From Lepidodermella squamata (lineage: Eukaryota > Animalia > Gastrotricha): DNA of 64,000 nucleotides. The translations under genes and the position numbers were made by a program. Shown one piece after another: positions 4,001 through 45,340 of the stretch. The DNA lies in NCBI GenBank assembly GCA_047495785.1, contig JBLDXI010000015.1, positions 4,216,001 to 4,280,000 of the forward strand. The letters run 5' to 3'. The notes beneath the pieces were generated by a model. That model was not told the origin of the DNA. It was given only the letters and a program-made list of their open reading frames with translations, and made no database searches. How positions within the stretch are numbered: the first letter of the stretch is position 1; the number at the start of each line of letters is the position of its first letter.

Positions 4001-7000
4001 GCGAAGATTCGCCGCCAGTTGTTTACATCGTCAACACACGTCTCTGATCAGACTTCGAACATTAAATTTAGCGAATAATGGCATGACAAGTTTCGTGTTT
4101 GAATCATCCACCGCGCCTGGAATCACCCAGCTTGATTTGAGTTCGAATAAATTTACAGCGTTGCCACAATCGCTGACTCAGCTGCAAAATTTGTCGGTTT
4201 TGAACGTGTCAAACACTCTGATAACAACACTTCCACCTGAACTGTCCCGCCTGAACCGGCTGTGGAGTCTTGAAATATCCAACTGCCCGTTATCAGGCGA
4301 ACTGGGCGCATTAGCTCGAGGCAAAGTAAGAACTGCTGACATCATCTACCACTTGCGGGCATCATTGGACAGGGCCCGTCTTCGGCCTATAACTCGGCTA
4401 TTGGTGTGTGGCTTTCCAGGTTCTGGGAAGTCGAGTTTGATCGACGTGTTGAAACGAGCTGCGAGCACTACAACGCCCCCGCCAGGGCATCAGAATAACT
4501 CGGATTTGTCTCAGGTAAAATTGATTTTCAATTTATCGTTATATAATTCCAATTTCGAGGCGTTCTCAGTATAAAGCTGAAAGTTCGCTAACTTAATCTT
4601 TGCAGCTGTACATTTTTTAGCTGTCAGAAATAATTTTTTTTGAAGATTTCGAGCTCCTGAAATTGATACCGCATTTGTTCCAATAGCAGCCCGGGCTTCT
4701 AAAATTTCAACCTCAAAATTTTGAAAAATTCGAAAATCAATTTTCGGCGAATCGCTCATTTTTTATGTTTTCGAACCGACTTGACCCATCAACCCTGGGC
4801 TACTAGTGGAACACATACGGTATTAAAAATAGAAAACAGCAATGATGTTTTTTGGCTGGGTTTAATCAAGCGAACAAATGTTGATTTTATCGAGTTTGCT
4901 CGTGGTGTAAACATGATCATCTGAATTCATGGCCATCGCTTGTGCGTCAATGCCTGTTATATGAAGCCACAATTGAAAATGGCTGTAATTTTACCGTGTT
5001 GATAGTGTCAAATTGAGTTTGTGAAGTTGTAATTGAAAATTTAATACGCGCTAGCGAATGTTCAAAACTCGATAAAAAAATCTATACCTGATACATCGTT
5101 CAGCTGTGGCTAAGAGAATAATAATGGCTACTCAATATGGTGTAAAATTTATGAGCCAAAGGCCAGTTTTATGCGCAATTCCTATTTTTCAGCTGCTCAA
5201 CTGCATGTTTTTTGTTGCAAACAGACGAACGTGATAAGAATGCGAAGTTACATCACGTCGAGCGCGTGTTTTTATTTCACATTTGTCTCAAACAATTTTT
5301 TCAAGTTTTTTGAATGAAGATGAATGATGATAACGACAATAACAGTATTTATATAACCACGAGAAATTAGGTCTCTACTTTACAGACTGAAAGCATGGCA
5401 CATTTGAAAAGGTAAATATATTATAGCGATAGAAATCCAGTTTGAGATTCGTACTCACGTAAATTTTGGTTTATATTAATGCGAAATAGTGGTACAAAGT
5501 TGTATAGTTCGCCGCCGCTATAATAAGAAGATTATGACTCGAAAAACACATGACGCGGCGCATTATGAAGAGTGGCCAAATCAGCGAAATGTCCCTCGCG
5601 CTGTTGTTGAAATGATACGAAATGAGTGAAGCAAACAATAAAGTAAAAATAGCTAAAAATTTAGCGTTAATTGTCGATATATCACCAAAGCCGCGACGAT
5701 TAAAATCGTCGTACCAATGGCGATGGCAAGTGTTGAGAGCAGCAGACTTGCGGCGTGAGTGATTCTTTGCCGTTTCGATTCTGAGTTATTTTGGCACGCG
5801 AGGACTAAACTGGGGATGGCGAGCGGCAGGCAGCCGAAAACTAGCGATATCAGCGCGTAGCCTATGGCGAATCGCCGTTCGCTTTTCGTGATTTCAGGCC
5901 GGAGGACAGCTCCGTTCTGGAAAACGAAGGGCACGTTGCGTTGTAAATACGCGGCATAATCATCGCGAAAGTTGAGAAATTGCAAGTTCGACGTTGATTG
6001 AACGCTATTCCTCGAGGCCGATTGCTCGCCGCTGCGACTCTTCTTCAAACTAGCCAGCGAGTGGTAGATGACGTTATTCGTTAAGGTAGCACCTTTCTCC
6101 GCAGGTGGCGGCCGATTGTTGTTCAGGTTGAACGTGACTGAATAAATATTTTCGTTTTGCGATATCCGAGGTTGCGGCTGCACTATTTGCGGTAGCGCAT
6201 TTTTTGACGCGTTTTCGATATTCATGACAGGGAAGTGAAACGGGTTGGTGATGAATGCGCTAGGTATGTTCAACACCTCCGTGCTACCTGCTATTACGGC
6301 CGTTTCATCATCGCGCTCGGCCATAGGTAGGTAATAAAAAACACGGCACTCGATTCACCTAGAGGTAAGATAATAAGATGTTGCGATAAGTGCTTAGTGA
6401 AAAATGATTAAAAACAGCCGTTAATGCAGAGGTTTTTTGATTAAAATTTCATGTAAACACGGACGGTTGCTGGTCAAAAATAAATCCTCGAGTTGATAAA
6501 TTGAAGCGGTAGAAGAGCGGGTGACTTAGTGTGTATGTGTTTTATAAAAAGGAAAAGCACCCGAAATTATTAATATAAAAATGAAAACATAATTTGAAAT
6601 GGCGCTGGGCGACTTAATTCTACTACCTGTGCTGCAGCGTGTATTATTTTTCACTTGAGAATAAACGAGCGCGTTGAAAGGAGATTCGGGCAACCGACCG
6701 GACGACGCGCTAACAGCATAAATAAATAGCGCGCGGCCCTATTATAGCGCTACCTTAAAATATCGCGCGCGCGCGAGCGACAGAACGTGTTTGCGTCGTT
6801 CTTCGTCGAAAAATCGATGCACACGCGCGTAGACAAACAACTGGCGATGATGATGATGTTGATGGACAGCGATGCCAGTTTGGCCGGTTAATATAAGCAT
6901 ATTGTTATTACACGAGCCTTAAAGTCGCAAAATATAGAGACGTTGCGTTGGGGACGACGAACAGCGGAACTTCATTTGCTTTTTAATATAACAAGTGTTT

Positions 7001-38935: not shown

Positions 38936-39526
38936 TCAGTCAACAAAAACAGTATCGTAATTAGCCAAACAAGCAAACTCATTTCTGAGCTCGTTGTGCT
39001 TTGGCCTGAAATTGAGCAGCCGACAGCCGGGTAGGTGATCTGGAACTCGATCACCAATCGCCGCCCCGGTGAGATAAAGTATTTTACCCCTAGATCCGGC
39101 AACAACTTTCACACTCTGCGCCATGTTGCTGAGGCAATCCTCTGACAAAAATGGCGGATCAGCGATGACTATTGAAAAATCAGACGGAAATTTCCCGGCG
39201 TTTTTCATTGCCTGCAACTCCGCGGCATTGAAACAATCATATTTGGTGAATTTTGACCCAGCCATCTCGCCGAACCGTCGGTCAAATTCAAACAGGTAAC
39301 AGTCTGAAGTGCGTTCGCTATACATTTCAGTGAAAGCCGAGTACAAGGAGGGACAGCTCATAAACGCAATCTTTTCTCCGGGTTTTGTCGCGTAATAAAC
39401 CTCTTTAGCTAGCAATGATTTCGTCGAATTTGAATACCAGAATTGGGACAGTTGCCAATTTTCAGAGTCGAAGCCAAGTTGACCCTGGCACGCGACCAAC
39501 GGGAGGTTGGCGCAATATTCTACCAT
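38936..39526 (-). CDS. EEF1AKMT1: EEF1A lysine methyltransferase 1 (N6AMT2)
   Basis: ENWQLSQFWYS, IAFMSCPSLY, LFEFDRRF, IADPPFLSEDC, FRPKHNELRNEF. Confidence 0.93.
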   Translation of the reverse strand: MVEYCANLPLVACQGQLGFDSENWQLSQFWYSNSTKSLLAKEVYYATKPGEKIAFMSCPSLYSAFTEMYSERTSDCYLFEFDRRFGEMAGSKFTKYDCFNAAELQAMKNAGKFPSDFSIVIADPPFLSEDCLSNMAQSVKVVAGSRGKILYLTGAAIGDRVPDHLPGCRLLNFRPKHNELRNEFACLANYDTVFVD

Positions 39527-39926
39527 TATATACCGAAAAACTCTAAAAAACAATCGAATTCATAAAAACGTTTCTTTTATTATTGTTTTTTGGTTTTTCA
39601 CAGTTACCGCCGAAATCGCCGGCACGAAGAACACCACAACCACGACAGCACGAAAAAGAGAGAACTAGAAATTGATTAGAGACAAGAACAGACAATAAAC
39701 GCGGTCGTTTCTTAAACGACTCGTCATTTTTCAGCAAGATAAATTTAGCAGTCTGAGATGGAATTACAATATAATAATATTATTATCGGAAATTCACAGC
39801 GTTAACATCTTCAATGGTTCATTCGGCTTTACACATTTATATCACCCTTGAAACAAACACCTAGTTTTAAATTGCCATTGCATTGCTTGCCTCGGACTGG
39901 TTGTGTAACGGCTTGTAACGAGGCGA

Positions 39927-41662
39927 TTACTTGAACAAGAAGCTGTACGGGTAGCCGCCGTACTTCGACCGGAAAATCGAAATCAGGAAACTGAAGAAGA
40001 CGCAGTACAAGCTGATACCAGCGATCGCCAACACTATTATTCAAAATTGAGATTTTTCATCGGTTATGTTCGTTTGCTCACCTTTCTTCCGGGTAGCGTC
40101 TTTCACGTTGTTAACCTCGTACAGCAAGATCATACCCAATGTGATGAGCATATCTGAAAAATTGAAATAATTAGCCAAAGTCTTCCCGAATTAATGCCAC
40201 TTCTTGCCATAAAAATCCCCGAATACTCGAGATTTTTACGGCGACGAAGTGCAAATGGCTTGAAGCTACCAGATTGTAAAAGTGACGCGGCTCAGGTGAG
40301 AAATATGTGCATTAAATGACAAGATGGAAAAGTGTTATCTCTGTTGATTGAACACATGTGAAACGAGAAAAATGATATTAATTCCCAGTTAATTAAGTTA
40401 ATTTAAAGCACCCGAAAAAGCAGAGATAGATACCGTAAAATTTGAGTAACAGATATAGTTATCACATGAACTAAGTAGGGTAACATATAACAAAGCCTCG
40501 CGTATTTACAAATTGTGGCGATAATGATCGTTTCGGCGACGAATTGCCCGTCCTCATTGGGTAGAATGTACAGCTGAAAGAAAACGGGAAGAAAAATTAT
40601 CGGATGAAGGTGCAAGGTATAAAGAGCCAGACACGTCACTTTTAATCTAATAGTTCAGCCTTAAAATTTATTCGAGAAAAATTACAGTGGAAAAAGATGA
40701 TGTAACTCTCCGCAACAAACTGGAACTGAGTGCTGCCGCTGAAATAGCCCTTTACAATACAATAAAATTGTTATGATTTCCGCCCAAAAATAATTGAAAA
40801 CTATCGCAATAGAATTTGTTGAACGAAGCTCAAGTTTACTTACCATAGCGCCAGTCTGCTGGTTGCGATGCATGAACGGAGGTCCTCGAATTTGATTCCA
40901 CATTTGACCAGAGATCATGCAGAAAATGATGGCCTAACAACGTCACATTTATTGAAAATCCACAATTAACTCTTTGCAACGTACCATTACGGACATTCCC
41001 CAAATCTGCTTACTGTACAAAAATTCCAGGCTGTTACGTTTGACGTAAAGCATCAATCCAACCAAGCCGACAAGCATCATAACAGCGAGGGTTCCTGAAT
41101 AGTTTGGCGGACGGAAGATGCGAACATTCAATTCGGTTCTATCCGACACCCATTTTCCAATATTTTCAGCCTCGAAACCGATGCGCTGAATGTCCATCGT
41201 ATCTTGAGTACGAGGCTTGGCAGTTTTGGGCGGGAAATGGATGAAAACCGGAACTGATTGAAGGCTCATTTGTTGGAAAGCGTCCATGTTATCGTCAAAG
41301 TCAGCAATAGCAAAGAATAACCGACCGGGATTGCTTTGGCTGGACAAATAATGCCACGAATTGGCTACAATTTGGAATTCTTCTGTTGCTTGTTTGCAAA
41401 TCGAACAGCCTCGCTGAGGAGCGTTTGCTGTGAACATAACAACCACCGAATAGTTTTTGTGTTGAGTTTTGACGTAGTTTTTGAAGCGGTCGTTATTTAG
41501 CTTAATCATGGGTCGTGATTGAGACCATTCCGTCATCTGTTCAACTTTTTCGACGTATAGATCGTTCACATCAACGGCAGCAGCAGCAGAACCTCCTCGG
41601 CCAGCAGCCCAAGCAGTACCGCAGGCGATAACGCCAAGCAAGAGTCCAATTATTAACTTCAT
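39927..41662 (-). CDS. TUSC3: Oligosaccharyltransferase OST3/OST6 subunit (TUSC3/MAGT1) with alternative exon 3a/3b
   Basis: Thioredoxin-like [38 protein letters not shown]. Exons 41662-~40984, 40933-40844, [40749-40686 or 40573-40510], 40153-40082, 40033-39927. Confidence 0.93.
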
Positions 41663-41846
41663 TGTTCGTAACCCTATGAAGCAAAATAACGCGATGAATG
41701 GCAATTAAATATTTAGTTTTCGTTCAGGATTATCAAGCACTTCGATGGTCAGGGAAGAGAGGCAGAGATAGTTGACAAAATCATAAATAAAATCATTTCC
41801 TTCATAATCACAGCCAACAAAAATATTCACCCGGGATGTCATCAGA

Positions 41847-42425
41847 TTAAAGAGCACCTAAATAGTCTTCAGCTAGCTTTCGGTAATAATTCAGATCCGG
41901 AGTTATCGCATTTGGATCTTTGGCTTGCTCATCAATATTACGAACAGCGAGAATAGCACTAAGATACAAATGATTGCCAAACTCCATGGCTTCTTCTTCA
42001 CTCATGGGACCGCCTTGTAGTTTCAAAGTTTCAACACTAGCAGGTGTCAACTTGGCCATATATCCCTTGTTAACTGCTACTCTGAAACGCTTTGCGTTCA
42101 CATGATGACGGATTAAGTCGGAGACCGCAGTGGGGAATCCAACTCGTTCCACATAATCAGCACCAAGATTCTCATGATTCACCGATCCCAATATGACACC
42201 ATCGGGCGCAACTAACTCTGGCAAGCCCAATTCGAATCCCAGCAGATGACCAATGTCGTGGAACAGAGCAGCTAAAACAACAGTTGGGTCGTAACCACTC
42301 TTTTCCGCAATAGATGCAGCCTGAAGGCTATGTTGAAGGAATGTAACAGGTTCGCCGATATAAAGGGAATTTCCATGCTTTTCGAACAACGCAAACAACG
42401 CATCGATGGTAGAAGGATAAGTCAT
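41847..42425 (-). CDS. PhnZ/TmpB-like HD-domain diiron oxygenase (phosphonate C-P cleavage), intronless
   Basis: YIGEPVTFLQHSLQAA, AALFHDIGH, NHENLGA, HHVNAKR, ASVETLKLQGGPM and DEQAKDP match the PhnZ motif series. Confidence 0.85.
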   Translation of the reverse strand: MTYPSTIDALFALFEKHGNSLYIGEPVTFLQHSLQAASIAEKSGYDPTVVLAALFHDIGHLLGFELGLPELVAPDGVILGSVNHENLGADYVERVGFPTAVSDLIRHHVNAKRFRVAVNKGYMAKLTPASVETLKLQGGPMSEEEAMEFGNHLYLSAILAVRNIDEQAKDPNAITPDLNYYRKLAEDYLGAL

Positions 42426-42774: not shown

Positions 42775-44739
42775 CCTGCCTGCCTGCCTGCCCTCATAAC
42801 TAGGGAACCTCAGGATCCCTAGAAAGCAAATTAGATCATTGGGCAGAGGAAAGCCCTATTGTCAAAGGTAATTTGCCAATCCTCAGACAGTAGTTTGAAT
42901 GGCTGTGCTAACTATTTTCTCCAGACGTTTGAAGAAAATTAAGGTATTTTTTACAATTCTATTGTCAGCACTAAGCAGCCTTGCAGGGTCGTGGCCAGCA
43001 ACAGATAAACAGTCGTAAGAAATATGGTAGGCTAACTGGCTCAGAGGAGTAACGTTACCACAGAACATACATGTAACATCATCAATTCTGAAAATAAAAT
43101 GTTCGATACGGCGAAAGACGGTGTTCGTGACGACTCGCAGAGCAGTATTTCTAAGGTCAGGTGGATAATTTTCGAATATCTTACTAATGCCAAAGTAACC
43201 GTCCCTGGCTAATAGGTAGCTGGCATTATATTTATTATGAAATTTGACAGATAGTTCAGAAACATAGCAGTCTTTGACTAGGTTGAAAAATTGCTCCATG
43301 ACTGCCGGGTCACGCATAAACCAGAAGTCGGGAGGCAGATTGTAGGATAATAGAAATTTACGAGTTGCGTGGATGGGATTTAAGACACCCATCTTCGGAC
43401 GAGAATGGAAGTAAAAAGAAAAAGCATCATTCACTAAGGGGTTGGCACATTTCGTCAGCTCACATGTAAACTTGACTGCATTGAGTTTCGCCTTTAGGCT
43501 AGGGGGAATAAGTCCCATAACAAAACCAGTTGATAAACTAGACGCATTGTACGGAATGTCGCGCGCTCTTTTATAATACTTATAACAGACGCTGTCCAAT
43601 TTAGCAACACGGCTAGGGGCGAAGAGGCCCCAGAGTTCGGAGCCTGCAAGCATCGCCGCTTCAATTTTGCTACAAAATAGTGTATCCAAGTTATTGCGTT
43701 CTATCATACTCAATTTGATCCTATGAGAGGAAAGAGCGTTGTAACAGCTATTGCCACGTGTAAGCGCATTTTCAATAGCTTCAAACCAGCTCAAGTCGCT
43801 GGATATCGGTACGCCTAGGTAGAAATCAGATTTTACAACTTTGAGAGGTACGCCGTTCATATTAAAGGAGTAACGGTCAGGTGAAACAGGAGCTTGGGAA
43901 AAAATGATAACTTTCGTTTTACCGGGGTTAGGGCTGAGCCCTTCTCTAGTAGAATACGTCGACATAGCATCAATCTGTATTTGCAAATCCACCGCGTTAG
44001 TTGCAGTGGGTGTGGAGTCGTCCGCATATAATACGCAAAGTACCTTGGTAGAAAGTAACTTAGGAATGTCTGATAGATTTTTGGCATTCTCAGCCAGATG
44101 AAGAGGCAAATCGGCGGTATACAGATTGTACATTAGGGGACCTAAGACGTCACCCTGTCTAACACCGCGTTCAATGGCGATGTCTGCAATAGACAGTTTG
44201 CTGCCAACTCGCACTTTGGCTTTAGCGTCGGAATAGAGAGAGTTCAATCTCTTGGCAAAGGAAGATGAGATACCTAATCGCTGGCATTTCCATATAAGAC
44301 GGTTGTGAGGAACGCAGTCGAAAGCTTTAGTAAAGTCGATTAAACATATAAAGAGCATTCTACCGCGAACGTGGATTTGGTACGTCGCCAACGACTGAAG
44401 GACGAAAGCCGCGTGTAAGCGCGATAATCCTTTTTCGAAACCAAACTGCTCTTCAGGTATGATCGAGTGAATTCTACACCACTTTTCCAGTCTCAATTTC
44501 AGTATAGTAGAATAAGTTTTGTATATTACGGATAAAAGAGATAATGGCCGGTAGTTGTCCGGCTTAGAGGAGTCACCTTTTTTGAACAAGGTGCAAAACA
44601 GAGACAAATTTAGTCCCGATGGCAGGGTGTAGCTAAGGAAACACGGTTCAAAAATTTTAAAGAGCGTCTTGCTGAAAAAAGAAACATTCAGGTCACTGTG
44701 TTGCATGAATTCAGCTGTAATACCATCCGGGCCGGGCGC
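42775..44739 (-). mobile_element. 5'-truncated non-LTR retrotransposon with an intact RT ORF and a 10-bp TSD
   Basis: APGPDG, YRPLSLLS, QFGF, DFTKAFD, GVRQGDVLGP, YADD and a C-terminal CxxC..H..C. CAGGTGGAAG is duplicated at 42765-42774 and 44740-44749. (GGCA)n tail and a 3' hairpin at 42800-42822. Confidence 0.93.
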
Positions 44740-45340
44740 CAGGTGGAAGGTGGCTATGCGCTCAAATCCCACTATGCGCGCGGTTTGCCGAACATTTGAG
44801 GACCAAAAATATGTTTGTTCTTTTCCTAATTATATTGCTGAAAATTATTTGCAGAATCATTATCAAGACTTTCACAGTATATCTGTTGGGTGACCTTGAG
44901 ACGACCTTGACAGCTCAATTTTCATTTTCTGCGCGATTTTCGTTCCATCAGTCAGCGCGATGTTAGCCGGGATTCCACCTGAGCCTGACTGACAGTAAGG
45001 CACAATGCGCGATGCACTTTCACCACTTCTGTACCGTATCGTTACCTTCTCCATGGAACTTAAAATGTAGAGCTTCGTGAATTCATCGTAGATATCAGGT
45101 TATTCTCGGTTATTCTCTGGCGTAGCAGTCACCGCCAATCTTGAACATTTGAATACGCAGTCGGCAGGTTCATGCTTGTGTTTTATTTCATCTTAGTTTT
45201 ACGACGGGGTCAGCGCCCGAGAGACGCTGATCGATTGTAAACATTCACTTGAGCCAAATACTTTCTCCTTCAACTTGTGAGATCATAATATCCTAAATGA
45301 TTCTTACGCAGATTGCAGGCTTACGCATTATTGATATCAA

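Follow-up and report, generated by a model that had tools for sequence, protein, structure and literature searches.

A conserved tandem pair of 64-nt exons in the OST3/6 (TUSC3/MAGT1) gene of Lepidodermella squamata

The window analyzed here is a 64,000-nt stretch of the genome of the gastrotrich Lepidodermella squamata (contig JBLDXI010000015.1, positions 4,216,001 to 4,280,000) carrying on its minus strand an OST3/6 gene with five exon positions, the third of which is present twice, as established by reading of the sequence and scripted translation (Table 1). The family identity proposed in the original prediction, OST3/6 (TUSC3/MAGT1), is borne out by a Pfam PF04756 OST3_OST6 match to exon 1 alone (184 bits against a cut-off of 27, E = 5.6e-54) and by a PDB search in which human MAGT1 in the OST-B structure (6S7T chain H) was matched at 1.6e-61. 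The same search matched the TUSC3 thioredoxin domain structures 4M8G (6.5e-55) and 4M91 (about 1e-54) as well as yeast Ost3. The CxxC motif is present as CSIC (C86-C89) in the luminal thioredoxin-like domain, and the spliced product aligns end to end with animal TUSC3/MAGT1, ending in GYPYSFLFK, which corresponds to the YPYSF-type tail of the family. The C-terminal membrane part has four helices, counted by reading the sequence. In a gene tree the window protein groups with P0001, the protein of its closest relative, and P0003, a transcript-derived protein of a relative, as sister to Brachionus-like and bdelloid sequences (support 100/98), a rotifer-like placement.

Table 1. Exons of the OST3/6 gene and arms of the predicted intronic helices, in window coordinates.
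Feature	Position	Strand	Description
Exon 1	41662-40985	-	Start codon, signal-like N-terminus, thioredoxin-like domain with CSIC, TM1, start of TM2
Exon 2	40933-40844	-	90 nt, 30 residues; TM2 and luminal loop; joints 40933>40985 and 40844>40749 in spliced contigs
Exon 3a	40749-40686	-	64 nt; default copy; present in spliced contigs X1, X4, X2
Exon 3b	40573-40510	-	64 nt; alternative copy with acidic loop; AG/GT ends, open frame
Exon 4	40153-40082	-	72 nt; remainder of TM3 and cytosolic loop; joints 40153>40686 and 40082>40033
Exon 5	40033-39929	-	TM4, C-terminus, stop codon; from joint 40033>40082 and translation
Helix, upstream arm	40660-40624	-	Intron 3a-3b; encloses 3b; predicted
Helix, downstream arm	40257-40293	-	Intron 3b-4; predicted
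Outer 11-bp helix, arm	40680-40670	-	5 nt after the 3a donor; predicted, probabilities 0.81-1.0
Outer helix, partner arm	40181-40191	-	About 28 nt upstream of the acceptor of exon 4; predicted

The neighbors of the OST3/6 gene lie on the same strand. Directly upstream is a gene for an HD-domain protein (41850-42425; PF01966, 5.4e-10), and directly downstream a 205-aa ORF (38939-39553) matching PF10237, a probable N6-adenine methyltransferase (4.2e-44). Further upstream a 629-aa ORF (42883-44772) is reverse transcriptase-like by its YADD motif and probably belongs to a non-LTR retrotransposon.

Copy 3b sits in the intron immediately after 3a, on the same strand. The original prediction described the two as tandem 64-nt exons with identical phase, AG and GT ends and a shared QFVAE motif, and this was confirmed to the base by minus-strand reading and scripted translation. 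Copy 3a has AG before it and GTAATT after it, copy 3b has a pyrimidine tract and CAG before it and GTAAAT after it, and each encodes 21 residues plus one base. The polypyrimidine tract of 3b is the best of the gene's five acceptors, with 95% pyrimidine in 20 nt compared to 50-70% elsewhere. The copies are identical at 24/64 nucleotides and 8/21 amino acids and, with the topology taken from family knowledge, their residues form the end of the luminal loop between TM2 and TM3 and the first half of TM3.

Scripted translation demonstrated that 3a alone or 3b alone gives an open product of 335 aa, while an mRNA with neither exon is frameshifted. The frameshift originally predicted for inclusion of both copies was also confirmed, with a stop arising inside 3b. 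Because each copy is 64 nt long (3n+1), only one copy can be productive per mRNA, and mRNAs containing both copies or skipping both should be lost to nonsense-mediated decay (NMD). Within the window no duplicates of exons 2, 4 or 5 were found, there was no match to Rfam, and no U12 features were detected at the pair, with both donors being of the GTAA type, the exon 4 acceptor being AG and no TCCTTAAC branch site being present.

The use of the two copies in RNA was assessed from contigs of four sequencing runs (X1-X4) placed on positions 39850-41750, these being assembled contigs and not raw reads. The contigs of X1 and X4 are spliced and therefore derive from RNA, those of X3 are unspliced and continuous and therefore derive from DNA, this run probably being where the window sequence comes from, and those of X2, from a related organism at approximately 95% identity, are spliced as well. 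Joints were seen at 40985/40933, 40844/40749, 40686/40153 and 40082/40033, all GT..AG on the minus strand. The first of these occurs in contigs of X1, X2 and X4, spliced contigs of X1 and X4 show the chain 2-3a-4-5 and extend to exon 1, and the X2 contig of the related organism joins exons 1-2-3a before continuing into exon-4-like sequence. Both junctions predicted for 3a (40844-40749 and 40686-40153) were thus recovered in spliced contigs, the flanking coordinates 40844 and 40153 having been placed correctly, with the second joint leaving out 532 nt, 3b among them. The two junctions predicted for 3b (40844-40573 and 40510-40153) were absent from the contigs of X1, X4 and X2, and neither a joint nor a loose end at 40573 or 40510 was present in the contigs of any run.

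Sequencing depth is in keeping with this. In X1 the depth was about 470-620 on exons 3a, 4 and 5, while the two bins covering 3b had depths of 5.8 and 1.1; the adjacent intron had a depth of 5-18, so that 3b is no higher than intron level. Depth over 3b was zero in both X4 and X2. In P0003, 3a is likewise joined directly to exon 4. A word search of a 5.8-billion-protein collection yielded no b-type isoform, which is a weak negative as the search needs three shared 5-residue words and applies a length window. Residues 231-270 of the Brachionus calyciflorus gene model P0040 used as a word query returned only P0040 itself, the window ORF holding 3b returned no candidate, and no b-type isoform was found by word search among transcript-derived rotifer proteins. 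Exon 3a is the default exon, with inclusion of 3b at about 1% or less in these bulk samples; this is a contig-based bound that does not prove absence, because contigs drop rare variants.

The closest relative of the window gene is carried by a pair of metagenome contigs from ENA (L001 and L002), which encode P0001 with 83% protein identity to the window protein. These contigs are syntenic with the window, an HD-domain gene lying upstream of OST3/6 there too. In L001, exon 3a (1796-1859) encodes a peptide identical to that of window 3a at 20/21 residues, and a second 64-nt exon (1895-1958; peptide MVIAPYEDEQFKLESYITGAI) is located between 3a and exon 4, as in the window, with AG before it, GTAA after it and an open frame in the same phase. 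The flanking introns differ in length, with 35 nt between 3a and 3b in L001 compared to 112 nt in the window and 88 nt between 3b and exon 4 compared to 356 nt. It is probable that the 35-nt intron between the copies in L001 cannot be spliced.

Within 3b there is no indel between the window and L001, and the last seven exon bases together with the GTAA are identical. Overall 32/64 nucleotides match, a level reached in 0/100,000 shuffles, with matches distributed over the three codon positions as 14/22, 12/21 and 6/21 (Fisher p = 0.016). Such a pattern is that of translated sequence under relaxed constraint. The constraint on 3b is weak, since 9/21 amino acids (43%) are identical compared to 20/21 (95%) for 3a. 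No further genomic relatives were found in JGI metagenome contigs using either the protein or a three-sequence alignment. Looking for the duplicate exon in orthologues, a check proposed with the original prediction, was positive, in that L001/L002 keep a 64-nt 3b with its splice sites and Brachionus has an analogous pair. The original prediction had rested on 3b being conserved and at least sometimes spliced in; conservation is evident in the relative, while splicing-in was not seen, with the contigs and P0003 containing only 3a.

Brachionus plicatilis (L005) also carries the exon twice, each copy being 64 nt long, but with the order reversed: VYMSDDNDFQLVAETLIVLFI, the acidic copy, comes first at 4060-4123 and GFFAGGHGYQFIAETYIVFAI second at 4178-4241, with 54 nt between them. 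Both have AG acceptors and both are followed by the donor ATATCCTTTT, with a single branch site TTCCTTAAC and an AC acceptor preceding exon 4 at 4309. The two copies cannot be spliced to each other because a U12 donor cannot pair with a U2 acceptor, and from the arrangement of splice sites either copy can reach exon 4; this is a design based on spliceosome incompatibility. Incompatibility between the U2 and U12 spliceosomes is a described mechanism of mutual exclusion (PMC4165533). The acidic b copy is identical at 20/21 residues between B. plicatilis and B. calyciflorus (P0040) compared to 84% for the whole protein, and the Brachionus b copy is therefore under strong constraint.

A different arrangement is found in the bdelloid Rotaria sordida (L003, 5490-6215), where a nested duplication has given the order 2a-2b-3b-3a with exons of 90, 84, 51 and 51 nt, all in frame, the extra 51-nt exon 3 being GLFADDSNMQYIAETYI. 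Only one copy is present in each of Rotaria socialis, Rotaria magnacalcarata and Adineta steineri. The b copy of R. sordida resembles its own a copy most closely (11/17), and since it is also missing in the three other bdelloids the duplication is separate and recent. In this species a 13-nt micro-exon precedes the AT-AC intron, and the gene models P0080 and P0081 hold odd combinations of the copies. In terms of peptide similarity the window b copy and the window a copy each match the Brachionus b copy at 8/17 positions. With these scores even and the order reversed in Brachionus, sequence comparison does not show the b copies to be orthologous from one lineage to the next.

In the window, the 532 nt that separate 3a from exon 4 fold at -126.8 kcal/mol (z = -3.9), with 0/100 shuffles folding as well. 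The main helix predicted in this interval has 33 pairs, 31 of them with a probability of 0.86-1.0 and the other two with 0.50 and 0.59, and is seeded by repeat I2. The helix arm was not found as a repeated element in the window, and one arm has a weaker competing partner in inverted repeat I4, which is 75% complementary. No bracketing helix is present in L001 (z = 0.16), and the predicted helix is therefore without comparative support. The second haplotype, seen in the DNA run X3, differs at 40188, which still pairs (G-U), and at 40191. The X3 contigs of this haplotype carry seven substitutions and one inserted base within the 77 nt of 40177-40253 in the intron between 3b and exon 4; the adjoining 1069 nt (40254-41322) are represented in X3 by a single contig without variants.

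The exon pair is real and conserved. The two copies are probably mutually exclusive, 3a being the default and 3b unproven in use, and on balance we favor 3b being a coding alternative that selection has maintained and that is used rarely or is confined to a particular cell type, stage or condition. The two copies are tandem duplicates of the loop/TM3 exon of the OST3/6 subunit, and 3b would swap a Gly/Ser-rich loop (SGSTQF) for an acidic one (PNEDG) and alter the TM3 face. In all b-type copies two or three acidic residues (PNED, PYEDE, DDND, DDSN) replace the Gly/Ser-rich loop end and the first turns of TM3 are altered. The 3n+1 frame would make the double-inclusion and skipped forms unproductive, with NMD removing them, while the predicted helices would loop out 3b and bring the 3a donor near to the exon 4 acceptor, favoring the splice from 3a to exon 4. 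Based on the folding model, this long-range helix probably contributes to 3b being skipped by default in spite of its strong acceptor. Elsewhere exclusion would be achieved by other means, namely U2/U12 incompatibility in Brachionus and the 35-nt intron in the closest relative. The mechanisms of exclusion invoked here are established ones (PMC4165533). The anatomy of the pair and the logic of the frame are as originally described. That one gene could make two OST-B accessory subunits, as first suggested, is plausible, although only 3a was recovered from RNA.

It is conceivable that 3b is instead an unused relic of exon duplication that has not yet decayed, a pseudo-exon, such that only the 3a protein is made. 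The transcript data showing 3a alone and the absence of b-type proteins from the database would fit a relic, as would the lower amino acid identity of 3b to the relative (43% compared to 95% for 3a) and a nucleotide identity of 50%, which is not far above the level that saturated neutral sites might reach. Yet the 64-nt length, AG, GT and open frame have been kept in two species whose introns are unalignable and differ up to fourfold in length, with codon positions 1 and 2 conserved and position 3 not. The strongest acceptor tract of the gene belonging to 3b and the strong amino acid constraint on a parallel second copy in Brachionus likewise argue against a relic, which we consider unlikely.

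Less likely again is a role for 3b as a regulatory poison exon, in which its inclusion together with 3a would generate a stop, trigger NMD and tune the level of OST3/6, no protein variant being made. The stop that arises inside 3b on double inclusion is what such a role needs, the instability of the resulting mRNAs would fit the missing 3b in the contigs, and the retained strong splice signals are compatible with it. A poison exon, however, needs neither an open exon-3 frame nor hydrophobic TM-like sequence nor QF..E, yet both species keep all of these, and the conservation of 3b shows codon periodicity. Moreover, the double inclusion on which it depends is probably blocked by the 35-nt intron in the relative and is forbidden by U2/U12 incompatibility in Brachionus. 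As for chance, whereby 3b would be intron sequence that happens to be open between an AG and a GT, open AG-64nt-GT segments are not rare, with 142 on both strands of the window. Compared with the 3a peptide, however, 3b is the best of these after 3a itself, scoring 21 against a background mean of -19 (sd 14), and its place is immediately downstream of 3a, on the same strand. This ranking and the homologous copy at the same place in the relative effectively refute a chance resemblance, making it extremely improbable.

A rarely used, protein-coding 3b can be compared with known systems. Clusters of mutually exclusive 3n+1 exons, such as that of lev-11 in Caenorhabditis elegans, have been reviewed (PMC4165533). 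As in the lev-11 type, 3a and 3b are tandem, homologous exons of the same non-3n length and the same phase with their own splice sites, and double inclusion or skipping leads to a premature stop; unlike the lev-11 type, here one exon of the two is seen in RNA and exclusive use is inferred. With respect to RNA structure, exon choice in Dscam involves docking and selector sites. In ATE1, exon choice is controlled by competing RNA helices (PMC7797038). The window resembles both in having a long-range intronic helix that would bracket one alternative exon, but differs in that this helix is predicted from one sequence without covariation and is absent from the closest relative.

Yeast Ost3p and Ost6p, like vertebrate TUSC3 and MAGT1, are paralogous, mutually exclusive OST accessory subunits, so that variety in this oxidoreductase subunit comes from a pair of genes in both animals and yeast. 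The suggestion that the exon pair is a splicing analogue of these paralogues holds as an analogy only: the family is the same and so is the idea of two versions of one OST subunit, but the paralogues are whole genes that differ throughout, including in the substrate-binding thioredoxin domain, while just 21 residues vary here. A role in Mg2+ handling has been claimed for MAGT1/TUSC3 and is disputed. Were one gene to exchange the loop/TM3 segment alone, this would mark that segment as a functional determinant, whether of STT3B docking, of substrate range or of the disputed Mg2+ role, and 3a and 3b would offer a natural two-variant experiment. Full-text literature searches returned no account of TUSC3, MAGT1 or OST3 exons being alternative or mutually exclusive, nor any such account for this gene in rotifers.

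The intron that follows the exon pair has its own history. In the snail Lymnaea stagnalis (L010, 8993-9420) there is a single exon-3 copy, and the intron after it is of the U12 GT-AG type (GTATCCTT, TTCCTTAAC) and matches the rotifer AT-AC intron in position and phase, while the window and L001 have an ordinary U2-type GT-AG intron at that site. The minor intron has therefore been converted in the window lineage. The mutually exclusive exons of the JNK genes (MAPK8-10) are enforced by U2/U12 incompatibility. The B. plicatilis pair is alike, its exon-3 copies being flanked by a U2 intron on one side and a U12 AT-AC intron on the other, and each combining a U2 acceptor with a U12 donor. This mechanism is unavailable in the window and its closest relative, which differ from the JNK type in having a U2-type GT-AG intron in place of the ancestral U12 one. 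Besides JNK, we know of no other example of an exon pair with this U2/U12-incompatibility design. Across rotifers, the comparison would present a compact example of one exon pair kept exclusive in three ways, by U2/U12 incompatibility, by a too-short intron and by frame plus RNA structure, and would also show the outcome of converting a minor to a major intron. Both human paralogues, MAGT1 and TUSC3, appear in a list of minor-intron genes (PMC7507305).

A more tentative and broader proposal, which we regard as possible but doubtful, is that the exon just upstream of this ancient U12 intron underwent repeated duplication in rotifer-like animals, once each for the window clade, Brachionus and R. 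sordida, with each extra copy gaining an acidic cluster at the boundary of the lumen and TM3 and so forming a conditional switch in OST-B docking or divalent-cation handling. In the window lineage, loss of the U12 intron would have led to the frame with NMD and the helix replacing incompatibility. The effect of such a switch on docking or cation handling is speculation. Many deposited rotifer TUSC3 models are truncated (P0006, P0009-P0011, P0014, P0018 and P0040, from Rotaria, Adineta and Brachionus), with tails such as YILF..., because gene prediction ran on through the AT-AC (U12) intron.
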